DNA of 64,000 nt. Origin: Zancudomyces culisetae HAW-14-8 (Eukaryota; Fungi; Kickxellomycota). Location: contig JBNJNM010000013.1 in the NCBI GenBank assembly GCA_052426225.1, positions 1,922,001 to 1,986,000 on the forward strand. Reading direction: 5' to 3'. The position numbers and the translations under genes are program-made. Of this stretch, positions 1,898-37,676 are shown piece by piece (position 1 is the stretch's first letter; every line of letters begins with the position of its first letter). The notes beneath the pieces were generated by a model. That model made no database searches, was not told the DNA's origin, and saw only the letters and a program-made list of their open reading frames with translations.

Positions 1898-2237
1898 TTT
1901 TCTCGACTGATCCTAAAAACCATGACTTGAGCGCATAGCCAAGGGAAAGTGATCGAAAAGAGTGAGAAAGTCTAATCACAAGCGCGGAATTGACCGACGA
2001 AGCAGGAACCAGCTAATTCCTGGTTTCTATTTAAACGTACTATATATTTATATATATCTGAATTCAGTATAAAAAAGCTCATTTATTTCATTTAAAAAAC
2101 GAATTTTGGCAAATAAAACAGAATTACTAGTAATCTCATAAAAATAAGTACTGTTCCCTCCACTCAAATGAAAAAAAGTCGGAATATCCGCTCAATGTCT
2201 AAACGTGTTCGAATTGGCCTTATAAAGATTGATGAAA

Positions 2238-3914
2238 CTACATGTACATCTTGGTTTCGAGATGGTTTATAAATGAGTCGACGTCTCCAAATGTCGTAAA
2301 TCTTCCCAGGAATATTATGATCGTTTTATTTGCACCACAAAACCAGGCCTGGATAAAGCTGTTGGAATAAATGGGATAGTACATTTTGAATTCCTTTCTA
2401 GGAAAATTGCCCCCATAATGAAGCCAGTCAGATTTATCAAGTTCAAGTTGTGGAATGCGTGCGCTGACTATACCTGGACATTTTGATGAAGTGTTTTCAA
2501 AGAGAACAGGAGCTCTAAAGCGCCCTGCCATTTTATGTGCTAAATAGCTTGAAAGCTGATTTAGCAACATCGTGTCATGCTAAGAAATAGAAATATTATA
2601 CTTAGTTAGTCAATAATGCCTTTTTCTTGCCAAGTTTACAAATTGAATGAACAAAGTCATCTTATATGTAACAAAAAAAAAAGTCAGAACCCCTACAGCT
2701 ATTGGTCATCAAACTTATCACCACAGTAACAAGTAATCTACCTGTTGTATCTAGAAACCAACGTAACGTTTATTTCTGATACCTTAGCTTTTGTATCAAT
2801 CATGTAGTTCAGATGCCTAAAGAGATTTTGAAAAAAGAAAGTATACTTACATGGTGTTCGGAAGTTGCAAGCTCACACGCCTCACCAAAACCAGCCACCA
2901 GAAAAGGTGATAGTGTTCCACTCCTCATGCCCCTTTCCTGCCCACCTCCTGAAACAATAGGCAGAAGACTAGATCTTAGATCTGATCTAATATACAATGC
3001 ACCTATACCTTGTGGTCCATATACGTCCTTTCCTGAAAAACTGGCGAGATCTATCCCAAGGTTCTTAAAATTAAAGGCGACTCTTCCAAAAGCCTTTGAA
3101 AAGTCACAGTGTAAAACAGCATTGTTATTTTTACAGAGTTCGGCTATCTCTTTGATAGGTTGTATGGTTCCTGAAACGCCATTCAATGCGGCGAATGTAA
3201 CCAGAAATGCACCTTGTTTGATATTTTTTTCAAGTTTAGCAATGTCTACATGGCCATCATCAAGCAATGGAATAGTGCTTATCGAAAATCCCTTGGTTTT
3301 CAGATACTCGCAACTTTCTTGTGTACCCTTGGAGTCGATACCTGAATTTAAAAGCACCTTTTTCTCTTTACGTTGAGTAAACTCGAATCCCTTTATTGCC
3401 AGATTGTTACTTTCGGTGATTCCTGATGTAAAATATATTTCATTTACATTTGCCCCAGTATAGTCAGCAATTTTCTAAAAAGTATTTGTGTTTTTTCGCC
3501 AGTTAGCTCAAGAAAACAACAATGTGTTTAAAATTAAAATAGTAAATAAAGGTATAGAGGTGCAGCTATCATGCATCGAAAACCGTAGCTTACCTCTCTA
3601 GCAGCATCAACATGGCGTAAAGCCTCCCTTCCAAATACATGAGACCGCGAATGGGGATTGCCATAGATTGTTGTCAAAAGTGGCAATGTTGCATCAAGAA
3701 TTCTGGGATCCATGACTGAATCCTCTGTCGCTCTTAAATGTCCTCCCTCATTTCTTGTTCCCAGTGTGGTTTTGGAAATGCACAAAGTTCGATATATACA
3801 ACACCTATACCTATAAACCTGAACTCTTTCCCACAACCATGGTTGAATTGGTTTTCTGGTGCAAATATTTGGGTTACATGATCCTGGTTTGGCTGACAAA
3901 ATTCTTGATATCAT
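2238..3914 (-). CDS. Cysteine desulfurase (Nfs1/IscS family)-like protein with catalytic residues lost; 3 exons (3914-3594, 3474-2851, 2579-2238)
   Basis: Family motifs DPRILDA, YGNPHSRSH, FTSGITESNNLAIKG, YGPQGIGALYIR, SGGGQERGMRSGT, LGRFTT. Introns 3593-3475 and 2850-2580 have GTAAG donors, CTAAC branch points and AG acceptors and restore the frame. Start codon uncertain. Confidence 0.8.
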
Positions 3915-4935
3915 ATGTAAAACTATTCCACAATCTTGAAGTGATGTGATAAGAGGAATGGAATTATGCTGATTTTAGGCTCCACTAACGCTATTTTTTC
4001 CTGACGTTTCCATATTTGATCACATTACGTAAATTAAATATATTTCAACCAAATTTAATTCTAACCTATTGTTGTGACATTTTTTGCTATTTTTCTGATT
4101 GGAGTGGCAAGAACTCTATCTAATTTTCAATATAAAATTGGTTCTAAAAATGTACTTTATATATCAGTAATAAAAATTAATATAGCAAATTAACAAATCT
4201 AGTAATGATAAATCAGTAAAAATATACTGCCAAAGCTGCATTAGCTAAAAAAAGGCCTCCCCAGCTAGTTGGACTAAATAAGCGGAATAAATAGTTTAAA
4301 ATAAAACAATCCCATTCTTTGCACTTTCAAATCGGCGTAGAAAAAAGCTTGAGTTTCATGTTATAACAGGTAGAAGTATAACTACAATGGATTATTTCTA
4401 TCAAGCGATCAGTAAACCCAAGCTAATTCGTAATTTACATTTGGCAAACTCGAGAAAAAAAAACTCCGCAGAATAGAAAGAATCGAGTGGAATATCTTTC
4501 CCATCATTCAAATAAAGCTGCTTTTAGTTTGCATCTATGATAAAAACAAATTTACACGTAATATTATTTGTTGTATGTTTATAAAACACGCAGAATGACT
4601 GTATTATAACTACGATTTTGGGGGTTGAATTTAAATTATTCTTAAACTTTTGCTTGTATGATTACATCAAAATACAAATGAGAGTTTGAGACAATACTCG
4701 AACAATGTATTGAAATTAGATTGTCGTGATTTTAGTTTCACAACACTAGTTAAATAGCATTCACTTCCATCTTTTTCTTAAATCTCTTATTTGCATATTT
4801 TAATTTTGACAATACTATATTTTGTATCTAGATAGCCGTTATACACTTTTCATTTCCAAAAAAAAAATACTCGGTAATAGGAACAAACATATACATAGGA
4901 TAAACCGGATGAAATAGTGAAAATAAATCGGAAAT

Positions 4936-5646
4936 ATGAACTTGGAGCAGTTTGAAAGCAGAGAGTATAGACATATACCTGAACAACCCATCGTCACAAG
5001 CTCAGCGCAAAGCCGCATAGATACTGTGAGTGGAGCCATACCACAGCTTTCTCTAAACTTAGACTCTACTGGCAGTGTTGAGTCGGGTATTTTGAACGAT
5101 GTTTTAGGCGAAAAGAGTGAGCCAGAGCATGACACCTGTAGTAATTCGTATTCAAAAGAGGTACAAATCAACCAGGAAGCAAGTAAGAAACCAGAGTTTG
5201 AATGGGTACCTGCAAGGGATGGATACATCCCACCGAATGCCGTAGTGGGTGGAACCGAAATTGATGGTACGCCGTTATATGTGGGAAGAGTCTTCTACGA
5301 TGGTGGTCTACATCCTGGTAAATGCGGTCCACATCTTGAAGGAGGCGGGTTTGCACTTGGATATGACGGAAAGGAGATAAAGCTAAACAAATATTTTGTA
5401 CTGTGTGGCGACGCCAGCAAACTAAAGTGGATTGAACAGAATGGTAATTTAATGATAATTGGGTTCAAGCCTTTAGAGGCTGGGAATGAAGCCAGCGGTG
5501 AACCACTTTACATTGCAAGGACAGAGTACAATGGTGGGTATCAGATAGGAAAGTGTGGAGAACATATAAAGGAGGGGATAGTATTTCCGTATTTTAAAAA
5601 AGAGAGATCCGAGAAAAAATATACTATTCTTGCACACCTGTACTAA
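4936..5646 (+). CDS. DM9-repeat (DUF3421) protein with acidic/Ser-rich N-terminus
   Basis: Two DM9 repeats: WVPARDGYIPPNAVVGG..DGTPLYVGR...GGLHPGK and PLEAGNEASGEPLYIAR...GGYQIGK. Confidence 0.88.
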   Translation: MNLEQFESREYRHIPEQPIVTSSAQSRIDTVSGAIPQLSLNLDSTGSVESGILNDVLGEKSEPEHDTCSNSYSKEVQINQEASKKPEFEWVPARDGYIPPNAVVGGTEIDGTPLYVGRVFYDGGLHPGKCGPHLEGGGFALGYDGKEIKLNKYFVLCGDASKLKWIEQNGNLMIIGFKPLEAGNEASGEPLYIARTEYNGGYQIGKCGEHIKEGIVFPYFKKERSEKKYTILAHLY

Positions 5647-6874
5647 CTTTATTCCTCAACGCATTATGTTTTTTTTTAATTTTTTTTTTAACTTTGAAAA
5701 TGTAACTCTTTATTTTTCGGTTAGTGGATATGATCTTATCTGATCTGAGAAGAGGGAAGGTATTGAGAAATGATAATAGTTGAAGTTTGTTTTACCTCTA
5801 GTACCCTCAGCTTTTCGATAAATAAAAAGTTTGCAATAGTAATCTAGAAAAATGACAATATGAAACTGGTCTAAATTTAATTGCAGTATAACATTGGTTT
5901 TTAGGAAAAAGAGGATGGAGGGGCGGAGTCATGGTTTATTTTTTAACGTGAAAAATGCATTTTAACCAAAACCAGTAAAACCAGCGCCATAATGGGATTA
6001 TCTCTTTCCATAACACTCCAACTGTCCCGTCAAAAAAAGACCACAATAATAATACACATCGTATCATATCGAAGTACATCGATCAAGTAAAAGCTTATTC
6101 ATCATATCTATGCCAAGCAATTTTACTCTTGTTTAGTTCGGCTCAAAGAAAAAAAAATGCTACCATGGTGAAAATTGGTGATGTTTATTTGCTTGTTAGT
6201 AATGGAGGCGTATGCCACGCCCTTACCTTTCCTTTCGCCTCTGCTAGAATAGGCTATTTGTTTAGTTTTTGACAAAAGAAAACAAAGCAGAACAACCCAA
6301 CGCAATACATTACAGCTGCGTTGGTTGGCTTGGTATTTTTCATTTCTTGCTCAATTGCATTGTTAGCAATTTCATGTGAATATTCGCTTCACCACTTACA
6401 AAATTCACAAGTCCGAATTTTTCTCTTTGAAATAAAAATAATGCATTAACCTACATATTTACCAAATCATGTAATCTTGTTGATCATTTTTGTACTGCAA
6501 TTTCAACCTTCATTTGCCGAGAATTAAAAAAGCACCTTTCCCCTTCTCCTCCCCCCCAAAAAAATATCTGAGATAAAATGCAAAGCTAACAGTTGGCATC
6601 AAAATAAAGAACAGTGGACAAGATGCCAAAAATAAGTGGTCGAAATTAACGAGCTTTCGGTTAAATGCCAAACGAACATTCTGTAAACTACGACAAAAAT
6701 AAAAATGCAATGAAATTCAAACTCAAACCAGGAGCAAATAGGTTTCACACTTTTCTATATAAACAACCCCACTCCATCCCTCACTCCAGGACAGAAATAC
6801 TTTGTTTAAAAACCCACAATCTCGTTCCATTATATTAAGGAGCCAAAAGGAAAAGTAATAAGACATATATAAAA

Positions 6875-19884: not shown

Positions 19885-20997
19885 ATGGTAAGTATATCGG
19901 ACACTACTATATTTATATTCCTACTTTGAATGCTATCAACTGTGGTACAGCCATTTGTATAAACTGTTTAAGGTTATAACTCCCTGGCGGCTTTGAATAT
20001 TGCTCGGATAAATGAAAAATATTTTATAATCGGGGGGCCTAAATTCAGATTCGAGTATTTATTGTCATACTTATAATTAAGAAAAGGCTGAATCCGAGAT
20101 TATTGTTTGTATAAGATGTGAATCTGGGAAGGGGAAACCAACAGAATTACACAAATAGCAATGTACTACTGTACTTTCACTGCGTATACTCTTTTTTTCA
20201 CTATTAGAGATTCATCATCTCGTATACAATATGTGCTTTTGTGGTTTTTGCAAGAGATTAAGATTGCATAGATATGATATATGCTGCGTATGGAAATACT
20301 TATTGAATTGATACTAACACAAAACTATTTTTCGTTAAAATATATAGTCTTTGGTTGTTACCGACAAAACTCAATTCCAACACATTATCCGTTTGCTCAA
20401 CACAAACGTTGACGGTAAACAAAAAATCGTCTATGCCTTGACAGCAATCAAGGGTGTGGGTCGCAGATACTCCACAATGGTTTGCAAGAAGGCTGATGTC
20501 GATCTAGAGAAGAGAGCCGGTGATATGACCTCAGAAGAACTCGAGCGTCTTGTTACCATTATCCAAAACCCACTCCAATACAAAATCCCAACATGGTTTG
20601 TAAATCGTCAGAAGGATATTGTAACAGGAAAATTCTCACACCTGGTTTCCAACGGTGTTGACAATGCTTTGCGTGAAGATCTTGAACGTATTAAGAAGAT
20701 CAGGCTTCATCGTGGTCTTCGTCACGCTTGGGGACATCGTGTACGTGGTCAACACACCAAAACCACTGGCCGTCACGGACGTACAGTTGGTGTATCAAAA
20801 AAGAAATGTAAGTTTGTTTTATATGTCTGTACACACTTATATACGCTGATGACTATGTTATTATTCTTACCTACATTGTCCGAACAAGCACTTTGCTTTT
20901 GCGGATATTTAACTAACTGACTATATTTTTGCTACAATAATGTGTTTTTGTATTTAATGTATAATTATACTAACTGTCTGTTTATCAACGTTTAGAA
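19885..20997 (+). CDS. RPS18: 40S ribosomal protein S18 (uS13); exons 19885-19887, 20348-20807, 20996-20997
   Basis: [50 protein letters not shown]. First intron follows ATG|GTAAGT; second intron T|GTAAGT...TACTAAC...TTTAG|AA splits the TAA stop. Confidence 0.96.
20840..20926 (+). ncRNA. Intronic box C/D snoRNA, U34/snR62-like
   Basis: Box C TGATGA 20847-20852; guide CTTACCTACATTGT 20866-20879, complementary to the conserved LSU rRNA stretch ACAAUGUAGGUAAG; D' CCGA 20880-20883; box D CTGA 20917-20920; flanking ATATA/TATAT stem. Confidence 0.8.
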
Positions 20998-21282
20998 AAT
21001 GCCTATTCTCGGTCCTTGGCAAGATTTATTTGTTGCTTTATTTCCATTTTTGCTTTCTACTTTTGTTTTAATTGTCTAATATATATAAACATTGTTTTTA
21101 AATAAAATGATATACATTTGGTTTATTGTTCAGTACACAAGATGGGTTTTATTTTATTGATATACAAAAACATAAACAATCTAACGTATTCGATACACAT
21201 TCCTAGTTATTTACCATGTCGGGATGGTACATATGTGTTGATTAGGCCTCAGTGATTAAAAAGGCTAAAAACAAGAGTCTTA

Positions 21283-22330
21283 GTCGCTGGGTATGGAGGT
21301 GAAATGTTCGGCATGTCTGAAGCAAGGGTAAAACCGATACAGCAAGCCGTGGACAACACATTAAGAATAGCCATGGGAGTGGGCAGATCGACATGCATGA
21401 GGAGATTGCGAGAAGAATTAAATATAACAGATATTTATAGTAGAACGACCAGAGCTAGAGACAGAGCATTCCACAAATGGAGTGGCATGAAAACATGGAT
21501 AGCAGATTTAATACAGAACCCCTTCAAACACTCGAAGGACACTTGGGTCACAGGGTACACAAGGTGGTCTAACAGATTCAACAGGATCAAGATTGATAAT
21601 GTACCAACCGGAGAGGTAAGAAAAACCAAAGAGACACTCGAGATAAACAACAGGCTGAAAGACAAGTCGAATATTACAAAGTGGATAAAGGAAGTTGGAG
21701 CAGGCCGACAAAGGAACTGGGTCGACTTACAAGCGGCTTTTCCACAGTACATGAAACACATTCTTTTCGTAGGTCGAATTCGAATAGGTCAATTTTGGAC
21801 CGCCACGAGATTAGCAAATTCGGGTTTTATAGATCCAGATTACAAAGCCAAATGTCCGTTCTGTAAGAAAGAAGAAAAAGAAACAGTTGAACATTACCTA
21901 TTAGATTGCAGCAGATGGGACGAAATTAGGAAGGATTTACTTACTGAATTTATAGATTTTTATAGTTCTTTTTTATCTAGCACGATTTCCGAGTGTGTTG
22001 AGCTTCGCAGGAAAATCGTGGGTAAACTCCTGGGGGAGGAGTTAAAGCTCAAACTACCTGGGATTCTTCGGGATCCAAACGCCACTTGCGTTAGAGCAGT
22101 GGTTTCCACAGCCCGGTTTCTTAACGAGACCTTTTTACCTCGCTACCTAGTGTTGAAAGACATTAGTGTAGTCCCACTCCCCTTGAACCAATGCCCATCG
22201 GGTACGGAGACTCTAGAGAGTCGAAGGGGAATAGGATGAGTTTAGATTATAGATTGTTTTTATTTTTTAGGAACTGTTTATTTTCTAAATAAATTTTTTT
22301 TTCTACCGAAAAAAAAAAAAAAAAAAAAAA
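21283..22330 (+). mobile_element. 5'-truncated LINE copy A with poly(A) tail and target-site duplication
   Basis: Near-identical to 27387-28431; TSD (AAAA)ACAAGAGTCTTA at 21267-21282 and 22327-22342. Confidence 0.95.
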
Positions 22331-22345
22331 ACAAGAGTCTTATCG

Positions 22346-22418
22346 GAATAGCCATGGGAGTGGGCAGATCGACATGCATGAGGAGATTGCGAGAAGAATT
22401 AAATATAACAGATATTTA
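22346..22418 (+). mobile_element. 5' part of an older truncated LINE copy, interrupted by the full-length element
   Basis: Matches internal ORF2 sequence at about 27469-27541; the same sequence resumes at 28432. Confidence 0.9.
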
Positions 22419-22843
22419 ACTTACTGAAATTTTGAAAAAAAATTTATACACTATAGTACTTCATTTTTTAAAAATTGGAAAATATAGCGATATCGACTAT
22501 TGACAGCGACTAAAATCACACAATATCTTAAATAAATTAATACCTATAAAACAAGCCTAAAAACATTAAAAACCATAAGAAAAAAAAAGATATATAGCAA
22601 TAAGAAAACATAAGAAAAAACATAAAAAGATAACAAAAAGATAACAAAAAAAGTTATAAAAAACCCAAAAAACATAGTAAAAAGTACCCAAAAGGTCATA
22701 AAAAACTCATAAAAAACACGTCTAAACCGAGATTAGTACTGATCTCGACACATTTAGTCCAACTGAACATAAATCTAAACCTAAATCTACTAAATTTAAC
22801 TGACCTTAAATCCAAAAAAACCCTAAGAAACGTCTGCGAAGAT

Positions 22844-24490
22844 ATGGCATCAACGCAGACGAAAGAAAAGTCCTATGCGCAAACTGCGCAAAGGGGCAGC
22901 TACCAAGCTGCAAGAGGAGGTAGAGCGATGCTCTACCAACAATACTCTATCCTCCACTGGGTCGATGAGAGACCCGATGTAGGGAATATGATTGTTTGCA
23001 GAACCAGAGATGAGCGAAAACTCGCCATCCGAACCAGAAGCATCAACGCAAACTATGATGCAGCAATGGGGGAGATCTCTGATACCCTAAAAGACTTTGA
23101 AGTATCATTCGACCAAGACAGAGAAAGAGGAGTTCTGTTTGTCTGGTTCAAAACAGTGGAAGACGCAGAAGCGGCTAGAAAGATCAAAAAAACTGTGTCA
23201 GGAAAGGAGCTAGATCTGTGGAACACCTTTCAACACACAGAAGTAACGAAGGTGGTGACCATACCATCATTCAAGAACGATGAGATCCATGGATTCGTCG
23301 CAAATCTATACCAAGTAATGAAGCACTATGGCGAGATTGCAGACATTATGGCATTAAGGGTGGCGGGCAACGATCACTTCGTTGTCAACAGCCTAAAGGT
23401 ACTAATAAGGATGCACAAGGGAGCTAAACTGCCTACAACAATAGTGGTAAAGGATGAAAAGATCAATCTGATTTGGGATGGGGCGCCAGCCTCTTGCACA
23501 TACTGCAAGATTGAGGGTCACTGGAAGAGTGAATGCCCTGAACTGACAAAACAAAGAAAAAGAAACAGACCAGACAGGTACAGAGAAATAAAACAAATGA
23601 TAGCAGAAGGCAAAAACCAGATTGAACAAGAGAGACAAAAAGAAATGGAAATGAATAAGGAGTTAGAAATGCAGAATGAACTAGAAAACCAACACGAAAA
23701 AAAAAGACAACAAGAACAGGAAAAACACCAGGAACGGGAAAAGCAGCAAAAAGAAGCCGAAAAGGAAGCGGAAAACGAAGCTGATAATGAAAATGAAAAT
23801 GAGAAGGAAAGGGCAAGCGATAAAGAAAGCTTTGACGACGACTACGAAAGTCGTATGGACGAAGGATACGACTCGGAAGAGGAAAAACAAGAACGAGTAC
23901 AAAATGAAGAGGAAGCACGAAAACAAGCAGAACTGGAGAAAGCAGAAAACATGGAGGTGGAAAATATCATCAACGAAGTTATCTTTAATAACAACATTAG
24001 TAAAAAAAATACAAAAAAACAAAAATTCAAAATACTGAAACAAAGCAGTAAACAAAAACAGATCAAAAAGATCAATAAACAAAAAAAAAATAAGGAAGAC
24101 AATGCAGTCATAAGGCTGGCACAAAAGCTTGCGATGAAGGAAAAAGAAGCAAAAGAAAGAATAGAAAGAGAATCACTTACAGCAGAAGGGGAGACACGAA
24201 TGGAAGCACAGCCACAACAAGAGGAACAAGGGCAAGAACAACAACAGCAACAAATGCAGCAACAAGGACAAGAGAAAGAGCAAGAGCAAGAAAAACAACA
24301 GGAACAGAATCAAGAACAGGAACAAGAACAACAACAGAACCAGCAGGCAAGAACACCACCTGCGCAAACGGTCGACAAAGAAACAGGGGACCTGGAGGGA
24401 CAGGTCAAGGACACCAATAGTAATTCTGGCATACAAGATGAGGAGATGAAGGAAGCACTCCCTTCATCTCCGATAAATGTAATGGATTAA
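22844..24490 (+). CDS. LINE ORF1 (RRM-like region, CCHC zinc knuckle, long Glu/Gln/Lys-rich tail)
   Basis: CTYCKIEGHWKSEC knuckle; LFVWFKTVEDAEAA RNP1-like segment; position upstream of ORF2. Confidence 0.9.
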   Translation: MASTQTKEKSYAQTAQRGSYQAARGGRAMLYQQYSILHWVDERPDVGNMIVCRTRDERKLAIRTRSINANYDAAMGEISDTLKDFEVSFDQDRERGVLFVWFKTVEDAEAARKIKKTVSGKELDLWNTFQHTEVTKVVTIPSFKNDEIHGFVANLYQVMKHYGEIADIMALRVAGNDHFVVNSLKVLIRMHKGAKLPTTIVVKDEKINLIWDGAPASCTYCKIEGHWKSECPELTKQRKRNRPDRYREIKQMIAEGKNQIEQERQKEMEMNKELEMQNELENQHEKKRQQEQEKHQEREKQQKEAEKEAENEADNENENEKERASDKESFDDDYESRMDEGYDSEEEKQERVQNEEEARKQAELEKAENMEVENIINEVIFNNNISKKNTKKQKFKILKQSSKQKQIKKINKQKKNKEDNAVIRLAQKLAMKEKEAKERIERESLTAEGETRMEAQPQQEEQGQEQQQQQMQQQGQEKEQEQEKQQEQNQEQEQEQQQNQQARTPPAQTVDKETGDLEGQVKDTNSNSGIQDEEMKEALPSSPINVMD

Positions 24491-24515
24491 CATCCTATTC
24501 AAGTAACAGAATTAC

Positions 24516-27500
24516 ATGATTATAACAACAACAACACAAACAAAAATAACAACAAATATCATAACTGATAAACTACTGGTACTCAACATACCAGAATTGT
24601 CTCAGAAAACTGTAAAATATTTTTTTTCGTTCATCACAAAAATCGAAAAAAAAAATTTACACGTTAAAAAAATCAAACAGAAAAATAAATCTTACCGCTT
24701 CGAAATTCAAAAAATCGACGGCTCCATGATTCGCATAACCGACCTAAAAAAAAGGGAGTTTGAAAAAAAATTAAAGTGTATATTAAAATTAGAAGAGAAT
24801 AAAAATGAAAGAGAGAAAAATTTAAAAAACGAAAAAACAAAAAATTTATACCAAAAAAAAATTGAAAAAAAAAATGAAAAAATTAACCTAAAAATAATGA
24901 CATACAACGTATGCTCAATAAAAAATAAAAAATATGAATTAGATTATTTTTTAACCAAAGTAAATCCAACCATACTATGCTTGCAGGAGACCCACCTGCA
25001 GGAGAAGTCTGGGAGGATGAACATAAATGGATACACATGTGTAGAGTCAAAAAGGCCGACACTAAAGACGGGTTCTGGTCTTCTAGTGGGGGTAAAAAAA
25101 AATATTGGCTGGCACATAGAGGAGTATAAAAATAATAATACCTGGATGGCTGCCAAAGTACATGGATATACTGAAAAGGAGAATAAAAAACTGGAAGTGA
25201 TGGTAGTAAATGTACACACGCCACACAAACCAAAAGAAAGAACTATGATGAAGAAGGAGGTAGAGGACTTCATCAACAAGGAATACGGTAAAAACAGAGA
25301 AATAAAAATAATACTATGCGGAGACTTCAACATGAGGACGAGCATCGTCACACCATGGTTGAAAAAATTCAGGTGCATAGTCAGGAGAGCCCCAACAAGG
25401 AAACGAAGCGGAACTAGGATAACAAAAAAGCGACTGAAGAACACCATCGATCACATCTTTTATACCCCCACAGTAGGACAATTCGTGACAACAAAACTAC
25501 ACAAAAAAATTGACCTCAGTGATCATCTGGCTATTACAGCTAACTTCACCATTGAGGAAATCAAACCAGAGCAGCAAAAAAAAATTGCCAACCGGAAATT
25601 ATTGGACCAAAAATCAGATTTATTTAGAAATCACAACAAATTTTCAATTTTGACATCTCTTAACGAAACTGACGAACTAATCAGTGAAACCGTTAATGAG
25701 ACTAAAAAATTGATGGATAAGATATCTGAAAAAAATAATCCAAACCCAAAAAATAATGAGAAATTGGCCGAAAAAAATTCCGAAGCCAAAAAAAAACAAT
25801 ATTTCTTGAGCAAAAAAACTCGAAAAATGATAATACTTCGCTGTAAACTGTTCAAAAAAATGCTCAGAGCCCGTGATGAACACGAGAAAGAGCTTTTCTA
25901 TAATGACTTCGTTCAAATGAAATCTAAAACTTCAAAGCTAATAAAAAGGGATCAAAAACTACAGAAAAAAAAGGAGTTAGTTAAACTATGTGAACACATC
26001 AAAAGTAACGATTCCAAGACGATGTGGAGATGGTTAAAAATGAGAGCTCTAAATAAAAAATCTGTGTTTAATAACGGAGGAGTTCTGGATGAATCAGGAA
26101 GTGAGATAACTGAGGAATCAGAGAAACTCAAAGTTTGGATAAAACATTTTTATAAATTATCAAAAAACGACAATAGCAACGCAAACACAATTCCAGAAGA
26201 ACTGGACGAGGAAATGGATTATTATAAAGAATGCGACGAAGAACCAACATGGACAGAAATTAAAGAAGCGCTAAAAGAAACTCCGAGAAACAAAGCAGCG
26301 GGTGAAGATGGCATTCCGAGCGAAATCTGGAAATTTATACAGAGCGATGAAGATCCAGACTCGGAATTAGCTTTACTTTTATTGACAGTAATAAAAAGGT
26401 TCTGGACTAATCCAAAATTGAACTGTGAAAATAACACCAGTGTTATTGTACCAATTTTCAAAAAAGGAAATACAAAAGATCCAAATAATTACAGAGGAAT
26501 TTCTTTAATCCCAACAATAACCAAACTAATTGCTAAGTTAGTTGCTAACAAACTTAGACTTATAGATAATAGGTATATCCTACTAGCAAAAGAGCAAGCG
26601 GGATTCAGGACACTGGAGGAATGCGTAGCTCAAGCTACAGCTCTATACGAAATTATAAAAAGGCGAAAAATCAATAATACAAAAACCATAATTTGTTTTA
26701 TTGATTTTGAAAAAGCCTACGACAAAGTGCAACACAATTTATTATTCAAAAAATTAAAAATGAACAAAATTAATGGAAAATTACTGGCAGCAATTAAAGA
26801 ACTCTATAATAACGCTAAAATAAAAGTAAGGGTAGGAAATGGATTATCGGAGGCGATGAACTTCGAAAGAGGTGTTCGCCAAGGATGCCCAGCCTCACCA
26901 ATGCTTTTTGATATTTTTATTAATGATATATTTGAAGGAATGGAGGGAATAGAAGTACCAGGAATTCAAGAAAAAATTCCGGGACTACTATTTGCAGACG
27001 ATACAGTTTTATTGTCAGACACTCCAGAACAGATGCAAGAAGCACTTAACACAATGCAGCAATGGTGTCAGAAGTGGGACATGAAGGTGAATGCTAGCAA
27101 GAGTGCAATTATGACAGTTGAAGCAGTGAATAGAACAAGTGACGAAAACAACAATAATATTGAAATTACGATTCCAGAATACTTTTTGGGAAGTGCAAAA
27201 GTACCAGAAGTAGATGAATATAAATACTTGGGTGTTATATTCAATAAATATTGGAATAACAAGCTACACATACAGGAGAGGAAAGAAAAAGTACAAAGAG
27301 CAACCATGAGCAACTACTATCTACTCAAAGACAGAAATACACCGCTGTTGATGAAAAAGATGGTAATTAGGTCGATAGTCATTGCGGTCGCTGGGTATGG
27401 AGGTGAAATGTTCGGCATGTCTGAAGCAAGGGTAAAACCGATACAGCAAGCTGTGGACAACACATTAAGAATAGCCATGGGAGTGGGCAGATCGACATGC

Positions 27501-28343
27501 ATGAGGAGATTGCGAGAAGAATTAAATATAACAGATATTTACAGTAGAACGACCAGAGCTAGAGACAGAGCATTCCACAAATGGAGTGGCATGAAAACAT
27601 GGATAGCGGATTTAATACAGAACCCCTTCAAACACTCGAAGGACACTTGGGTCACAGGGTACACAAGATGGTCTAACAGATTCAACAGGATCAAGATTGA
27701 TAATGTACCAACCGGAGAGGTAAGAAAAACCAAAGAGACACTCGAGATAAACAACAGGCTGAAAGACAAGTCGAATATTACAAAGTGGATAAAGGAAGTT
27801 GGAGCAGGCCGACAAAGGAATTGGGTCGACTTACAAGCGGCCTTTCCACAGTACATGAAACACATTCTTTTCGTAGGTCGAATTCGAATAGGTCAATTTT
27901 GGACCGCCACGAGATTAGCAAATTCGGGTTTTATAGATCCAGATTACAAAGCCAAATGTCCGTTCTGTAAGAAAGAAGAAAAAGAAACAGTTGAGCATTA
28001 CTTACTAGATTGCAGCAGATGGGACGAGATTAGGAAGGATTTACTTACTGAATTTATAGATTTTTATAGTTCTTTTTTATCTAGCACGATTTCCGAGTGT
28101 GTTGAGCTTCGCAGGAAAATCGTGGGTAAACTCCTGGGGGAGGAGTTAAAGCTCAAACTACCTGGGATTCTTCGGGATCCAGACGCCACTTGCGTTAGAG
28201 CAGTGGTTTCCACAGCCCGGTTTCTTAACGAGACCTTTTTACCTCGCTACCTAGTGTTGAAAGACATTAGTGTAGTCCCACTCCCCTTGAACCAATGCCC
28301 ATCGGGTACGGAGACTCTAGAGAGTCGAAGGGGAATAGGATGA
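24516..28343 (+). CDS. LINE ORF2 (APE endonuclease, reverse transcriptase, C-terminal CCHC)
   Basis: TYNV, LQETH, GDFN, IDHIF, SDH (APE); YRGISL, QAGFR, IDFEKAYD, GVRQGCPASP, LFADD (RT); CPFC..ETVEHYLLDC. Confidence 0.97.
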   Translation: MIITTTTQTKITTNIITDKLLVLNIPELSQKTVKYFFSFITKIEKKNLHVKKIKQKNKSYRFEIQKIDGSMIRITDLKKREFEKKLKCILKLEENKNEREKNLKNEKTKNLYQKKIEKKNEKINLKIMTYNVCSIKNKKYELDYFLTKVNPTILCLQETHLQEKSGRMNINGYTCVESKRPTLKTGSGLLVGVKKNIGWHIEEYKNNNTWMAAKVHGYTEKENKKLEVMVVNVHTPHKPKERTMMKKEVEDFINKEYGKNREIKIILCGDFNMRTSIVTPWLKKFRCIVRRAPTRKRSGTRITKKRLKNTIDHIFYTPTVGQFVTTKLHKKIDLSDHLAITANFTIEEIKPEQQKKIANRKLLDQKSDLFRNHNKFSILTSLNETDELISETVNETKKLMDKISEKNNPNPKNNEKLAEKNSEAKKKQYFLSKKTRKMIILRCKLFKKMLRARDEHEKELFYNDFVQMKSKTSKLIKRDQKLQKKKELVKLCEHIKSNDSKTMWRWLKMRALNKKSVFNNGGVLDESGSEITEESEKLKVWIKHFYKLSKNDNSNANTIPEELDEEMDYYKECDEEPTWTEIKEALKETPRNKAAGEDGIPSEIWKFIQSDEDPDSELALLLLTVIKRFWTNPKLNCENNTSVIVPIFKKGNTKDPNNYRGISLIPTITKLIAKLVANKLRLIDNRYILLAKEQAGFRTLEECVAQATALYEIIKRRKINNTKTIICFIDFEKAYDKVQHNLLFKKLKMNKINGKLLAAIKELYNNAKIKVRVGNGLSEAMNFERGVRQGCPASPMLFDIFINDIFEGMEGIEVPGIQEKIPGLLFADDTVLLSDTPEQMQEALNTMQQWCQKWDMKVNASKSAIMTVEAVNRTSDENNNNIEITIPEYFLGSAKVPEVDEYKYLGVIFNKYWNNKLHIQERKEKVQRATMSNYYLLKDRNTPLLMKKMVIRSIVIAVAGYGGEMFGMSEARVKPIQQAVDNTLRIAMGVGRSTCMRRLREELNITDIYSRTTRARDRAFHKWSGMKTWIADLIQNPFKHSKDTWVTGYTRWSNRFNRIKIDNVPTGEVRKTKETLEINNRLKDKSNITKWIKEVGAGRQRNWVDLQAAFPQYMKHILFVGRIRIGQFWTATRLANSGFIDPDYKAKCPFCKKEEKETVEHYLLDCSRWDEIRKDLLTEFIDFYSSFLSSTISECVELRRKIVGKLLGEELKLKLPGILRDPDATCVRAVVSTARFLNETFLPRYLVLKDISVVPLPLNQCPSGTETLESRRGIG

Positions 28344-28431
28344 GTTTAGAATATAGATTGTTTTTATTTTTTTTAGGGACTGTTTATTTTCTAAATAAAT
28401 TTTTTTTTCTACCGAAAAAAAAAAAAAAAAA

Positions 28432-29330
28432 ATAACAGATATTTATAGTAGAACGACCAGAGCTAGAGACAGAGCATTCCACAAATGGAGTGGCATGAAA
28501 ACATGGATAGCAGATTTAATACAGAACCCCTTCAAACACTCGAAGGACACTTGGGTCACAGGGTACACAAGGTGGTCTAACAGATTCAACAGGATCAAGA
28601 TTGATAATGTACCAACCGGAGAGGTAAGAAAAACCAAAGAGACACTCGAGATAAACAACAGGCTGAAAGACAAGTCGAATATTACAAAGTGGATAAAGGA
28701 AGTTGGAGCAGGCCGACAAAGGAATTGGGTCGACTTACAAGCGGCCTTTCCACAGTACATGAAACACATTCTTTTCGTAGGTCGAATTCGAATAGGTCAA
28801 TTTTGGACCGCCACGAGATTAGCAAATTCGGGTTTTATAGATCCAGATTACAAAGCCAAATGTCCGTTCTGTAAGAAAGAAGAAAAAGAAACAGTTGAAC
28901 ATTACCTATTAGATTGCAGCAGATGGGACGAAATTAGGAAGGATTTACTTACTGAATTTATAGATTTTTATAGTTCTTTTTTATCTAGCACGATTTCCGA
29001 GTGTGTTGAGCTTCGCAGGAAAATCGTGGGTAAACTCCTGGGGGAGGAGTTAAAGCTCAAACTACCTGGGATTCTTCGGGATCCAAACGCCACTTGCGTT
29101 AGAGCAGTGGTTTCCACAGCCCGGTTTCTTAACGAGACCTTTTTACCTCGCTACCTAGCGTTGAAAGACATTAGTGTAGTCCCACTCCCCTTGAACCAAT
29201 GCCCATCGGGTACGGAGACTCTAGAGAGTCGAAGGGGAATAGGATGAGTTTAGATTATAGATTGTTTTTATTTTTAGGAACTTTTTATTTTCTAAATAAA
29301 TTTTTTCTCTACCGAAAAAAAAAAAAAAAA
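28432..29330 (+). mobile_element. Truncated LINE copy C (3' 0.9 kb plus poly(A))
   Basis: Near-identical to the 3' end of copy B, with its own SNPs. Confidence 0.95.
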
Positions 29331-30172
29331 TTAAATATAACAGATATTTACAGTAGAACGACCAGAGCTAGAGACAGAGCATTCCACAAATGGAGTGGCA
29401 TGAAAACATGGATAGCAGATTTAATACAGAACCCCTTCAAACACTCGAAGGACACTTGGGTCACAGGGTACACAAGGTGGTCTAACAGATTCAACAGGAT
29501 CAAGATTGATAATGTACCAACCGGAGAGGTAAGAAAAACCAAAGAGACACTCGAGATAAACAACAGGCTGAAAGACAAGTCGAATATTACAAAGTGGATA
29601 AAGGAAGTTGGAGCAGGCCGACAAAGGAATTGGGTCGACTTACAAGCGGCCTTTCCACAGTACATGAAACACATTCTTTTCGTAGGTCGAATTCGAATAG
29701 GTCAATTTTGGACCGCCACGAGATTAGCAAATTCGGGTTTTATAGATCCAGATTACAAAGCCAAATGTCCGTTCTGTAAGAAAGAAGAAAAACAAACAGT
29801 GGAGCATTACTTACTAGATTGCAGCAGATGGGACGAGATTAGGAAGGATTTACTTACTGAATTTATAGATTTTTATAGTTCTTTTTTATCTAGCACGATT
29901 TCCGAGTGTGTTGAGCTTCGCAGGAAAATCGTGGGTAAACTCCTGGGGGAGGAGTTAAAGCTCAAACTACCTGGGATTCTTCGGGATCCAGACGCCACTT
30001 GCGTTAGAGCAGTGGTTTCCACAGCCCGGTTTCTTAACGAGACCTTTTTACCTCGCTACCTAGTGTTGAAAGACATTAGTGTAGTCCCACTCCCCTTGAA
30101 CCAATGCCCATCGGGTACGGAGACTCTAGAGAGTCGAAGGGGAATAGGATGAGGTCTACCGAAAAAAAAAAA
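29331..30172 (+). mobile_element. Truncated LINE copy D, with a 3'-UTR deletion
   Basis: Near-identical to the 3' end of B; ends GGATGAGGTCTACCG(A)11 and lacks about 60-65 nt of 3' UTR. Confidence 0.95.
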
Positions 30173-30745: not shown

Positions 30746-33700
30746 TTATTGAACATTGTATTTTGGTGGTGAGCTCATGTAGTAGGGGTTGGTGGGGGTT
30801 CTTGTTGAGTAGATTCCTCCTCCTCCTCCTGATGATACAGTTGTGGTTATGGTTATTGTTCCGTTGCTTGTAACTGTGGTTGTTGAAGTGTAGGTCTTTG
30901 TATCGGTTATGGAGAGTGTTGCAGTGTTAGTTACAGTGGCGGTGTTGGTGACTGTGTCGATGGATGTGTATGTTGTTGTATCTGTTACTGTGGAGAAGCT
31001 GGTATTTGTATCTGTAACGGTTTGAGTTTGGGTTTGGGTTTGGGTTTGGGTGTCAGTGTTGGTAATTGTTGCGGTGTTGGTAACAGTGTATGTCTGGGAG
31101 TTGGTTACAGTGGCAGTGTCAGTTACGGTAGCAGTGGCAGTGTTGGTAACGGTGTATGTCTGAGAGTTGGTTACAGTGGCAGTGTCAGTTACAGTGGCAG
31201 TGTTGGTGACTGTTGCGGTGTATGTCTGAGTATCAGTGAAAGTGATTGTGAAGGTCTTTGAATCTATTACAGTGGTGCTGGTTGTTATGGTGTCAAAGTT
31301 GGTAACTGTTGCAGTGTATGTCTGGGTGTTGGTTACAGTGTTAGTGATTGTTTGGGTTCCGAAAGATGTGGTGGTGTCAGTAACAGTTGCAGTGTATGTC
31401 TTTGTTTCTGTTTGGGTTTGGGTTTGGGTGTTAGTGACAGTGTTTGTAACAGTCTGGGTTCCGAATGATGTGGTGGTGTTGGTAACAGTGTTTGTAACTG
31501 TTTGAGTTCCGAATGATGTAGTGGTGTTGGTGACAGTGTTGGTGACGGTGTTGGTGAAGTTGCTGGTAACGGTTTGAGTCTGTGTCTTTACTTCTGTCTT
31601 TGTATCAGTCTTGGTTTGAGTCTGAGTGTTGGTGACGGTGTTGGTGACAGTGTTGGTAACAGTGTTTGTGAAGTTGCTTGTAACGGTTTGAGTCTGTGTC
31701 TTTACTTCAGTCTTTGTATCAGTCTTGGTTTGAGTTTGAGTTTGAGTGTATGTCTTTACTTCAGTCTTGGTTTCAGTCTTGGTTTGAGTTTGAGTGTTGG
31801 TGACAGTGTTGGTTACAGTGTTGGTGACGGTGTTGGTGAAGTTGCTGGTAACGGTTTGAGTCTGTGTCTTTATTTCTGTCTTTGTATCAGTCTTGGTTTG
31901 AGTTTGAGTGTTGGTGACGGTGTTGGTGACAGTGTTGGTAACAGTGTTGGTGAAGTTGCTTGTAACGGTTTGAGTCTGTGTCTTTATTTCTGTCTTTGTA
32001 TCAGTCTTGGTTTGAGTTTGAGTTTTTATTTCAGTCTTGGTTTGAGTTTGAGTGTTTGTGACGGTGTTGGTGAAGTTGCTTGTAACGGTTTGGGTCTGTG
32101 TCTTTACTTCTGTCTTTATATCAGTCTTGGTTTGAGTTTGAGTTTTTGTTTCAGTCTTGGTTTGAGTTTGAGTGTTGGTTACAGTGTTGGTTACAGTGTT
32201 GGTGACGGTGTTGGTGAAGTTGCTTGTAACGGTTTGAGTCTGTGTCTTTACTTCTGTCTTTGTATCAGTCTTGGTTTGAGTTTGGGTGTTGGTGACAGTG
32301 TTTGTAACAGTGTTAGTGACTGTTTGAGTTCCGAAGGATGTGGTAGTGTTGGTGACTGTTGCAGTGTATGTCTTTGTTTCAGTCTTGGTTTGGGTTTGGG
32401 TGTTTGTGACAGTGTTTGTGACAGTCTTGGTTCCAAATGATGTAGTGGTGTTGGTGACAGTGTTGGTGACAGTGTTTGTAACAGTCTGGGTTCCGAATGA
32501 TGTAGTGGTGTTAGTGACAGTGTTTGTAACTGTTTTGGTTCCAAATGATGTAGTGGTGTTTGTAACAGTGTTAGTGACAGTTTGAGTTCCGAAGGATGTG
32601 GTAGTGTTGGTTACAGTGTTTGTAACAGTGTTTGTGACTGTTTGGGTTCCGAATGATGTAGTGGTGTTGGTTACAGTGTTGGTCACAGTTTGAGTTCCGA
32701 ATGATGTAGTGGTGTTGGTTACAGTGTTTGTAACTGTTTGAGTTCCGAATGATGTAGTGACGTCTGTGATTGTGTTGGTTACAGTGTTTGTGACTGTTTG
32801 GGTTCCGAAGGATGTGATAGTGTCAGTAACTGTTGCGGTGTATGTCTTGATTTCAGTTTCAGTTTGAGTTTGAGTGTTGGTTACGGTGGCGGTGGCAGTT
32901 GCAGTTTCGATTTCGGTGCTGATAACTGTGGATACAATTGTGGTGTTGGAGTATGAGGTGATTATGTTTGTGAGTGTGCTTGTTGATACACTAACGGAAA
33001 CAGATGTTGATGTGATTGTGTTGTTGATGTATGATGTGAATGTGCTGGTTACAGTAGCAATTTCAGAGTCGGTAACAGTTGATGTACTAATGCTAACAAG
33101 TGTGCTGGTCTCTGTGTTGACAACAGTTTCTGTGATTGTATTATTGTTGAAAGATGTAACAGTATCAGTAACAGTAGCAGTTGTTGTAGAGATGGATGTT
33201 TCTGTGTCAACTACAGTCTTTGTAATAGTGTTATTATTGAAAGATGTAACAGTATCAGTGACAGTTGCTGTGTATGTGGATATAGCCTCAGAGATAGATA
33301 CGGAAATAGATACGGAGACAGATACAGATACAGATACAGATACAGATGTTTCTATGTCAGTTACTGTTTGTGTAACGGTGTTATCGACAACTGATGTGCT
33401 GATGCTTGTTTGGATGCTTACTTCAGTGCTAACTGAAGTGTAAGTTGAGGTAACAGTGTTATCGACAACTGATGTGCTGATGCTTGTTTGGATGCTTATC
33501 TCAGTGCTAACTGAAGTGTAAGTTGAGATAGATGTAGAGATAGATGTAGAGGTAGATGTAACAGTGTTAGTGACTGTGACGGTCTTTTCTCCGCTGTTGG
33601 TTGTACCATAAACTCCACTACCATGGTTTCCATATCCACTAGTCGAATATCCACTATTTCCGCTTCCATTGTAAGCTGGTTGTTGTGAAGTGTATGAATT

Positions 33701-34408
33701 ATCTCTCTTTGCCTTACCATTGCTTTGGTTGGATTTGTTGGATTCGGCGTTGTCTTTACACAATTTGTTGTCACAAAGCTTACCGCCTAGTGTACAGATG
33801 CAGACAGAGCAGTTCTTGCGTATATAGAAGTTTCCGCTTCCAAATTCATTAACACATGCAACATGGTTCTGGATGTTTTTTGCGCTTAGCTTGGGTATGT
33901 TGCTACCTTCTGCGGTTCTGGAGGCTTTCTTGTTTGGCAAAACAAGTTTAAGAAGCTCACTGGCGTTAGTTACTTCTTCGGCGTAGCACTTGGCTCCATT
34001 TAGGGTACAGATACAGCTTGATGAGTTATCTGCACCAACAAAGACGTCGTATCCGTTTTTGGCAACACAGCTGTTATAGACTTCCCATTTCTTTGAAACC
34101 TTGAAGCTGAGTGGTGATTTATTATCAATGCTAGACATGGTGCATTGGCTAAATCTGTCGCATACAATTCCATCCTCTTTACATTGGCACTTGGAACAGC
34201 CCCTATCCAAGTAGAATGCATCATTTCCGTAGATGTTAGCACACTCAGTCATAAGATCGAGTGCTGCTTTGGCGTCTTTTTGTGGGTGGCTAGCAGCTCT
34301 CTTTGCCATAGCATTGTCAACCACGACTTCCTTAATTTTTGGTATTTCTGCTGAATACACTGCAGCTAGCAAATGTATATTTGCAACTAATGACTTGAAT
34401 ATCCTCAT
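30746..34408 (-). CDS. Secreted protein: signal peptide, three Cys-rich modules and a ~900 aa Thr-rich repeat region (adhesin/mucin-like)
   Basis: MRIFKSLVANIHLLAAVYSA signal-like N-terminus; KR dibasic sites; C-x14-CxxCxC-x3-G-x2-C modules; TVTN, TQTQTKT and TTTSFGTQ repeats in a 1220 aa open frame. Confidence 0.9.
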   Translation of the reverse strand: MRIFKSLVANIHLLAAVYSAEIPKIKEVVVDNAMAKRAASHPQKDAKAALDLMTECANIYGNDAFYLDRGCSKCQCKEDGIVCDRFSQCTMSSIDNKSPLSFKVSKKWEVYNSCVAKNGYDVFVGADNSSSCICTLNGAKCYAEEVTNASELLKLVLPNKKASRTAEGSNIPKLSAKNIQNHVACVNEFGSGNFYIRKNCSVCICTLGGKLCDNKLCKDNAESNKSNQSNGKAKRDNSYTSQQPAYNGSGNSGYSTSGYGNHGSGVYGTTNSGEKTVTVTNTVTSTSTSISTSISTYTSVSTEISIQTSISTSVVDNTVTSTYTSVSTEVSIQTSISTSVVDNTVTQTVTDIETSVSVSVSVSVSVSISVSISEAISTYTATVTDTVTSFNNNTITKTVVDTETSISTTTATVTDTVTSFNNNTITETVVNTETSTLVSISTSTVTDSEIATVTSTFTSYINNTITSTSVSVSVSTSTLTNIITSYSNTTIVSTVISTEIETATATATVTNTQTQTETEIKTYTATVTDTITSFGTQTVTNTVTNTITDVTTSFGTQTVTNTVTNTTTSFGTQTVTNTVTNTTTSFGTQTVTNTVTNTVTNTTTSFGTQTVTNTVTNTTTSFGTKTVTNTVTNTTTSFGTQTVTNTVTNTVTNTTTSFGTKTVTNTVTNTQTQTKTETKTYTATVTNTTTSFGTQTVTNTVTNTVTNTQTQTKTDTKTEVKTQTQTVTSNFTNTVTNTVTNTVTNTQTQTKTETKTQTQTKTDIKTEVKTQTQTVTSNFTNTVTNTQTQTKTEIKTQTQTKTDTKTEIKTQTQTVTSNFTNTVTNTVTNTVTNTQTQTKTDTKTEIKTQTQTVTSNFTNTVTNTVTNTVTNTQTQTKTETKTEVKTYTQTQTQTKTDTKTEVKTQTQTVTSNFTNTVTNTVTNTVTNTQTQTKTDTKTEVKTQTQTVTSNFTNTVTNTVTNTTTSFGTQTVTNTVTNTTTSFGTQTVTNTVTNTQTQTQTETKTYTATVTDTTTSFGTQTITNTVTNTQTYTATVTNFDTITTSTTVIDSKTFTITFTDTQTYTATVTNTATVTDTATVTNSQTYTVTNTATATVTDTATVTNSQTYTVTNTATITNTDTQTQTQTQTQTVTDTNTSFSTVTDTTTYTSIDTVTNTATVTNTATLSITDTKTYTSTTTVTSNGTITITTTVSSGGGGGIYSTRTPTNPYYMSSPPKYNVQ
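30830..33580 (-). repeat. Nested coding repeats (12-bp TVTN unit inside larger TTTSFGTQ and TQTQTKTDTKTEVKTQTQTVTSNF units)
   Basis: Direct reading. Confidence 0.9.
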
Positions 34409-37521: not shown

Positions 37522-37594
37522 GCCTTCTTGGCTCAGTTGGCAGAGCGTCTGCCTAGTAAGCAGAAGGTCGCCGGTTCGATTCCGGCAGAAGGCA
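37522..37594 (+). tRNA. tRNA-Thr(AGT)
   Basis: Complete cloverleaf: acceptor GCCTTCT/AGAAGGC, D arm GCTC/GAGC, anticodon arm TCTGC-CTAGTAA-GCAGA, T arm GCCGG-TTCGATT-CCGGC. Confidence 0.97.
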
Positions 37595-37600
37595 CTGTTT

Positions 37601-37672
37601 GCCTGATTAGCTCAGTGGTAGAGCGTTGGTCTTGTAAACCAAAGGTCGGGTGTTCGATCCACCCATTAGGCA
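37601..37672 (+). tRNA. tRNA-Thr(TGT)
   Basis: Cloverleaf: acceptor GCCTGAT/ATTAGGC, anticodon arm TTGGT-CTTGTAA-ACCAA, T arm GGGTG-TTCGATC-CACCC. Confidence 0.97.
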
Positions 37673-37676
37673 TTAC

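Follow-up and report, generated by a model that had tools for sequence, protein, structure and literature searches.

LINE copies stacked in sense behind ribosomal-protein genes in the fungus Zancudomyces culisetae

We analysed a 64,000-nucleotide (nt) stretch of the genome of the gut fungus Zancudomyces culisetae HAW-14-8 (assembly GCA_052426225.1, contig JBNJNM010000013.1, forward-strand positions 1,922,001 to 1,986,000). This whole stretch is called the window below. In it, several copies of one long interspersed nuclear element (LINE), termed family 1, stand one behind another downstream of a gene for the ribosomal protein uS13/RPS18. A first-pass annotation of the window had proposed that the endonuclease or ribonucleoprotein of this element prefers a site of about 22 bp in its own second open reading frame (ORF2). 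On the evidence presented here, the finding worth following up is the landing of the element behind ribosomal-protein genes, in sense, and a preference for the ORF2 site is unsupported beyond generic A-rich hot spots.

A LINE stack downstream of RPS18

The features of the locus are as follows, in window coordinates.

20348–20997, + strand: 3' part of the uS13/RPS18 gene (Pfam Ribosomal_S13, E = 9e-53; splice sites and stop codon read from the sequence)
21267–21282, + strand: 16-nt stretch of unique DNA to the left of copy U, its target-site duplication, repeated at 22327–22342
21283–22331, + strand: copy U, a 5'-truncated LINE with poly(A), element positions 4969–6013 (98.6% in BLAST to copy B)
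22346–22418, + strand: left remnant of an older copy, 73 nt, element positions 5051–5123 (100% match to 27469–27541)
22419–28431, + strand: copy B, a full-length LINE ending in an 18-nt poly(A), delimited by BLAST of B against the window, reading frames and domains
27520–27541, + strand: the native, uninterrupted 22-nt ORF2 stretch within B, at about ORF2 residues 1002–1009, between the reverse transcriptase and the zinc motif
28432–29330, + strand: copy C, made up of the right duplicate of B's target and the remainder of the unit that B interrupts (element positions 5110–6013), with a 14–16-nt poly(A)
29329–30172, + strand: copy D, starting at element position 5102–5104, with a deletion of about 68 nt inside the 3' untranslated region (3'UTR) and a poly(A) of 11 nt; unique DNA comes next

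The RPS18 stop codon is apparently split by an intron, with T at 20807 and AA at 20996–20997. This intron (20808–20995) uses the donor GTAAGT, and its branch site, TACTAAC, is at 20968–20974. Between the stop codon, completed at 20997, and the left duplication of U lie 269 nt of unique DNA, and U itself begins about 285 bp beyond the stop. A gap of 4 bp separates U from the older copy downstream of it. Neither U nor the RPS18 gene appears in the first-pass annotation.

That annotation had placed B inside an older copy of its own family, and B does sit there. The same 14-mer flanks B exactly, at 22405 and at 28432, forming a 14-bp target-site duplication. The final 14 nt of the left remnant are B's left duplicate, and 59 nt of the older copy precede them. 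Altogether the window holds five copies of the 14-mer where 0.09 are expected by chance: at 21424 (in U), 22405 (B's left duplicate), 27528 (native, in the ORF2 of B), 28432 (after the poly(A) of B) and 29337 (start of D). The annotation was also right that the poly(A) of C runs into the same ORF2 stretch. The poly(A) ends at 29328–29330 and is followed directly by TTAAAT and then by the 14-mer, in ORF2 register. This C–D junction corresponds to element position 5102–5104 (two A's are ambiguous), 6–8 nt upstream of B's site, whose duplication begins at 5110.

Between C and D, 8 of 800 sites are different, and only D has the 3'UTR deletion. Five subfamily-diagnostic sites separate the two, C grouping with U and D with B. 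Since C and D can be told apart by sequence, a collapse or expansion artefact behind the B–C–D order is unlikely in this apparently HiFi assembly. The RPS18 flank is single copy in the genome, and no second haplotype from which to order the events was found.

The two reading frames of B are intact (548 and 1275 amino acids). ORF1 (22844–24490) carries a weak CCHC knuckle (zf-CCHC, E = 2.3e-3, below the Pfam cut-off). ORF2 (24516–28343) encodes an APE endonuclease (Exo_endo_phos, residues 128–337, E = 1e-11), a reverse transcriptase (RVT_1, residues 651–909, E = 1e-39) and a weak C-terminal zinc motif (zf-RVT, E = 2.4e-4, also below the cut-off). A Pfam search of the element proteins gave no RNase H match. 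Among solved structures in the PDB, ORF2 is best matched by human L1 ORF2p (E = 5e-25). The nearest database protein is 37% identical to ORF2, and the nearest named one, a microsporidian endonuclease-reverse transcriptase, 32%. The contigs that bear the nearest relatives of ORF2 are of insufficient length or uninformative. No Rfam family matches the element at E ≤ 1, and a ribozyme or other known RNA family within it was rejected for that reason.

Throughout the genome, where our family copy counts are lower bounds, poly(A) tails of family 1 measure 10–26 A and the 5' ends of copies range from 2011 to 5637. Target-site duplications of 11–16 bp occur at no fewer than 10 loci, mostly with an A-run at their start. 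The poly(A) tails, the duplications from A-runs and the frequent 5' truncation are those of target-primed reverse transcription, and the element is an L1-like, APE-type poly(A) LINE that moves by this route, with L1 and Tx1 as its candidate clades. The duplications differ at every unique-DNA locus; the single constant target of a sequence-specific LINE is not found.

At the 5' end of full-length copies stand short tags matching the sequence beside another copy. At C11:4154.8 kb (loci elsewhere in the genome are given as contig and position) the tag is an 11-nt piece of a target-site duplication, at the nested copy C23:110.1 kb it is an 11-nt piece of the host ORF2, and the first 10 nt of B (22419–22428) equal ORF2 positions 28043–28052. 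The tags look like 5' transduction and could identify master copies.

Placement relative to ribosomal-protein genes

Family 1 forms about 30 clusters on at least 11 contigs. The anchor gene, meaning the nearest upstream gene on the same strand, was read at 18 of these loci. At 15 it is a Pfam-confirmed ribosomal-protein gene, encoding uL5, uL15, uS13, eL37, uL4, eS8, uS11, P1/P2, eL20, eL32, eL24, uL16, uS9, eS28 or eL36. Two further loci, on contigs C21 and C19, are duplicates of each other behind a Stm1/HABP4-like gene (a weak Pfam match). The one exception is a full-length copy at C8:1.149 Mb, and even for this copy eL36 is 2 kb away. For genes whose last exon was read, the stack begins 176–742 bp beyond the stop codon, mostly 176–453 bp; at the longer distances, remnants of a second LINE family lie in between. 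The copy next to the gene is bordered by a separate duplication of unique DNA wherever such a duplication can be recognised, as U is in the window.

Ribosomal-protein genes number roughly 80. With 8,484 genes annotated in the published HiFi assembly (PMC12611240), they make up only about 1% of genes, so the association at 15 of 18 loci cannot be chance. The local target sequences at the stacks are unrelated to one another, and what is constant in these 15 loci is position and orientation relative to the gene class. The stronger pattern is that the LINE arrays are anchored by their position behind ribosomal-protein genes, always in sense, rather than by their own sequence. Dead, 5'-truncated copies are placed in the same way as the others, an indirect hint that favours a bias at integration. 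A literature search found no publication describing LINE targeting behind ribosomal-protein genes.

Two other accounts of the anchors were considered. That any highly expressed gene will serve is weakly argued against by the EF1-alpha and GAPDH loci, near which no family-1 3' end was found (their expression is assumed, and the copy lists are lower bounds). Both of these genes are present twice, on different contigs. That the anchors are processed pseudogenes, or chimeras made by template switching of the reverse transcriptase, was rejected: they keep their introns (the stop-codon intron of RPS18; exons of uS9 and eL20 in different frames), no poly(A) stands at the gene–LINE boundary, and the duplication that borders U consists of unique DNA.

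The two loci behind the Stm1-like gene, C21:2325 kb (L023) and C19:16 kb (L035), have in common an identical 850-bp upstream flank that includes this gene, and the LINE begins at the same 5' boundary in both. The LINE units of the two loci are distinguished by 12 subfamily sites, and the downstream flanks differ as well. They may be haplotigs or recent duplications whose arrays have since been overwritten.

A second LINE family likewise sits behind ribosomal-protein genes, at L008, L012, L013, L016, L017, L037, C11:4906 kb and C15:1079 kb. Its 3'UTR is about 70–78% identical to that of family 1, and the Cys motif of its ORF2 differs. About 110 nt of 3'UTR (window 28278–28408) are conserved between the two families (70–78%) and contain complementary G/C-rich arms. 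This segment may serve the reverse transcriptase as a recognition structure.

Junctions with the element's own sequence

The first-pass annotation had suggested counting what follows the poly(A) tails of this family. We read the sequence after each family-1 3' end genome-wide by anchored patterns, which gave 57 readable 3' ends. Own-family sequence adjoins 24 of these (42%), the second LINE family 7 and other DNA 26. Family 1 occupies about 0.5% of the genome, a rough estimate from the copies seen; relative to this share, landing next to or inside LINE sequence is enriched roughly 90-fold. The 'self-building safe-harbour array' of the annotation is apt as a general idea but mistaken about the anchor, which is the position behind ribosomal-protein genes and not the element's own sequence. 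At the seven junctions with the second family, that family hosts the insertion, the family-1 3' end adjoining its ORF2 or 3' end, and two of the seven fall at the position homologous to family-1 5566–5570.

The own-sequence junctions are spread along the element. Those at element positions 1, 37 and 52 are head-to-tail joins with full-length copies. The remainder lie at 5058, 5102–5104 (twice, together with the duplicate partner of a nested element), 5110, 5224, 5272, 5334 (twice), 5440, 5499 (twice), 5528 (four times), 5566 (twice), 5570 and 5637. Targets in the ORF2 region thus occupy at least 12 positions over element coordinates 5058–5637. Duplications on both sides are carried by six nested insertions.

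How often the 22-nt stretch is used can be read from this census. A poly(A) lies within 12 nt of the 14-mer in only three places in the genome, two in the window and one on contig C21 (about 2606–2613 kb). At the latter, a poly(A)–TTAAAT junction at the same element position is accompanied by a nested element whose duplication starts there. The stretch accounts for 4 of the 57 junctions, or 4 of the 24 in own sequence, and these represent three insertion events at two loci. Over the 15 insertion events into native own sequence, exact coincidences of position number 3 against 0.5–0.7 expected (p = 0.02–0.03), and pairs of events no more than 11 nt apart show no significant excess (6, with 4 expected). 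Outside the pair of junctions on which the proposal was founded, the stretch was struck in 1 of 13 events (p = 0.42).

A specific preference of the endonuclease or ribonucleoprotein for the 22-nt stretch, by which the element would home into itself and build its arrays there, is on these counts rather improbable. It would explain why three events at two loci use element positions 5102–5123, a recurrence that is independent in that the C21 copies belong to other subfamilies, and it agrees with the overall excess of exact coincidences. At least four other positions recur as often or more often, however (5334, 5499, 5528 and 5566–5570), and replication outside the founding pair fails. The stretch is uninterrupted in all six full-length copies seen whole, including the exceptional copy away from a ribosomal-protein gene, and the duplication of the nested C21 element begins at a poly(A) tail, a generic target. 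What the junctions display is several mild hot spots, all at A-run boundaries. The 22-nt stretch is one of them, and there is no dedicated site.

Formation of the stack and comparison with known systems

We lean towards an explanation in which integration is directed to a narrow zone behind ribosomal-protein genes, so that newcomers strike the copies already resident there. Integration itself would be steered to this zone, and because the zone is narrow, later insertions would strike short, 5'-truncated residents. In the window, the old copy (22346–22418 plus D) would have landed first, about 290 bp beyond the RPS18 stop. C would then have entered it about 51 nt in, at 5102–5104. The complementary DNA (cDNA) of C would have passed the homologous point, where the nicked top strand could prime second-strand synthesis in register, leaving a head-to-tail repeat with no 5' scar. 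B would have entered 6–8 nt further on and, being copied full length, would have produced an ordinary 14-bp duplication. U would have entered about 20 bp upstream of the old copy.

In pre-insertion coordinates the nicks would lie about 270 nt (U), 290 nt (old copy), 341 nt (C) and 349 nt (B) beyond the RPS18 stop. In this preferred reconstruction, four nicks fall within about 80 bp, 270–349 bp past the stop. Those of U and B are fixed by their duplications; that of the old copy is taken from its 5' end, which has no recognisable duplication, and that of C depends on the in-register model. At other loci, the offset of a nested insertion with duplications from the 5' end of its host is 0, 0, about 45, 59 and 166 nt, in hosts 600–960 nt long. 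The two junctions in one 22-bp stretch would then reflect a shared landing zone and a generic preference for A-rich nicks, not sequence recognition, because both insertions struck the same narrow zone when it was occupied by the older copy.

Four models give the same C–D structure, and among them the in-register join is our preferred explanation, and a plausible one. The first-pass annotation had already proposed such a seamless join, and indirect evidence from the whole genome supports it. Poly(A) tails average 13.7 nt in the distal units of stacks, against 19.4 nt in internal units (p = 0.002) and 18.1 nt in solitary copies (p = 0.016). Private substitutions are commoner in distal units, at 17 in 5835 nt compared with 7 in 8946 nt (p = 0.003; about p = 0.08, by our own estimate, without the nested cases proven by duplications). 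The short distal tails and the more numerous distal substitutions together suggest that new copies are added at the end of a stack nearer the gene. In two cases, the first of three units behind eL32 and the proximal one of those that follow the Stm1-like gene on C21, a proximal unit is mosaic in its subfamily signature, and the interval of the switch contains the junction coordinate. The three units of the eL32 array belong to different subfamilies and share the same 5528 junction. Position 5499 is the site of a duplication-proven nick at C15:862 kb and of a seamless junction at C8:1707 kb.

On a larger scale, we moderately favour the view that an L1-like lineage of at least two families homes, in sense, to a zone past the 3' ends of ribosomal-protein genes, where its arrays would grow by in-register resolution of cDNA on resident copies.

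Several points weigh against this account. An in-register join is scarless by definition, and the 73-nt remnant contains no diagnostic sites, so that the window itself gives no order for C and D. No recognisable target-site duplication surrounds the old copy or the whole A–D block. The 5' ends of copies are non-random in unique DNA too, where independent copies share truncation points (4969/4970; 5151, twice; 4535, twice); truncation hot spots could therefore explain recurrent junctions with no preference in nicking. On C21, the duplications of two full-length or nearly full-length nested elements (about 2599 kb and 2606.5 kb) start precisely at an upstream poly(A), which makes poly(A) tails themselves targets, and two insertions there even share one 12-nt duplication. 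At the duplicated Stm1-like locus (C21 and C19), the resident units have the same boundary and different sequence. Copies can therefore be overwritten, which weakens the arguments from subfamily signatures. The anchor gene was read at 18 loci, and about 12 further loci were left out. Finally, insertion preference and selective retention are not formally separated by these data.

The remaining models for the C–D junction can be set against the same observations. D could be a later, 5'-truncated copy that entered the poly(A) of a unit made of 22346–22418 and C through the usual preference of L1-type elements for A-tracts, with 5102–5104 a truncation hot spot and its nearness to B's site a coincidence. 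We regard this as unlikely, although the nested C21 elements and the truncation hot spots in unique DNA both lend it weight, as does the fact that D shares all its subfamily markers with the intact and presumably young B, while C groups with U. It predicts a younger distal unit with a fresh, long tail; the distal tails are instead the shortest, and in D itself the tail is 11 nt long, part of the 3'UTR is deleted and private substitutions number 2, where C has 1. It also needs identical truncation points to be repeated within one array (5528, twice, behind eL32). Less probable still is a single event in which the reverse transcriptase, on reaching the 5' end of a broken RNA at 5102–5104, switched to another LINE RNA at its poly(A) and copied this as far as 5051. 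The R2 and L1 reverse transcriptases are well known to jump end to end between templates in vitro. Such an event would account for direct joins of poly(A) to a 5' end with no intervening duplication and for joined units from different subfamilies, and defined RNA ends could explain why end positions recur in both unique and own-sequence contexts. It leaves unexplained why distal tails are shorter than those of solitary copies, though primed alike, and why private changes tend to be more frequent in distal units, and the A–D block has no flanking duplication.

Very unlikely, in our judgement, is a tandem duplication or unequal crossover at the DNA level, with no retrotransposition. Unequal crossover does occur: in the three-unit eL20 array (L032, C21:1814–1816 kb), the middle unit is an exact hybrid of its neighbours, matching the distal unit in its 5' part and the proximal unit in its 3' part, as would be expected from one such crossover. 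Resident copies can moreover be overwritten, as at the duplicated C21/C19 locus. A simple duplication is disfavoured by the five diagnostic differences between C and D, each of which is common to other copies (C with U, D with B), and by the 3'UTR deletion found in D alone. At the junction, furthermore, a complete poly(A) tail meets an internal element position, which is the signature of reverse transcription.

Family 1 resembles mammalian L1, including human L1, in its APE endonuclease, reverse transcriptase, weak C-terminal Cys motif, poly(A), variable duplications from A-runs and 5' truncation, although the two ORF2 proteins are only distant relatives. L1 integrates genome-wide with no specificity for a gene class, unlike family 1 with its place behind ribosomal-protein genes. 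For chimeric L1 insertions, a resolution of nascent cDNA on a resident copy by homology, resembling synthesis-dependent strand annealing, has been proposed and is cited in PMC8087252, a published precedent for the in-register join. Such in-register joining is apparently frequent in family 1 and a rarity in L1. Zepp, a LINE of Chlorella and Coccomyxa, also ends in poly(A) and builds up clusters of mutually nested copies (PMC3446292), and it shares with family 1, with its 24 of 57 ends on own sequence, the habit of self-nesting. Each chromosome has a single Zepp cluster, probably located at the centromere or at telomeres, whereas family 1 forms about 30 clusters, and 15 of the 18 examined follow ribosomal-protein genes in sense.

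The APE-type elements R1, Tx1L and the telomeric TRAS/SART families also have this endonuclease and use one place repeatedly, but theirs is a single target sequence with a constant junction, and the duplications of family 1 are all different. In Dictyostelium TRE5 and TRE3 and in yeast Ty3, integration is specific in position and orientation to a gene class, and repeated strikes build stacks. Placement in family 1 is likewise tied to a gene class and not to a DNA sequence. The difference is that those elements target RNA polymerase III genes, while the family-1 anchors are ribosomal-protein genes transcribed by RNA polymerase II, with the landing zone beyond their stop codon. The window's own transfer RNA (tRNA) genes, two tandem tRNA-Thr genes 4 bp apart (37522–37673, anticodons AGT and TGT), lie 7 kb away and carry no family-1 copies; no LINE copies adjoin them.

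Retrotransposons of compact genomes survive by using harmless landing sites, of which tRNA genes, ribosomal DNA, telomeres and heterochromatin are known. If our reading is true, landing behind ribosomal-protein genes, always in sense, would extend this list of safe harbours by a new class. The termination zones of ribosomal-protein genes would then presumably have some host feature in common that the integration complex can read. Such landing would also be a case of targeting specific to gene class and to the 3' end at RNA polymerase II genes, which is not described for any LINE in the literature searched. The stacks are natural records of successive integrations and could show how often L1-type cDNA is resolved by homology or by end-joining, the homology-resolved outcome being nearly invisible in mammalian genomes.

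Two minor features were recorded besides. An unrelated repeat has the same 13-mer as the 3'UTR anchor of family 1, followed by a conserved stretch of about 45 nt, at C6:963 kb, C6:1754 kb, C7:379 and 384 kb, C21:1588 and 1593 kb and C23:759 kb. In the window, a 1220-amino-acid open frame of highly repetitive content (30746–34408, minus strand) converges on the LINE stack from downstream.

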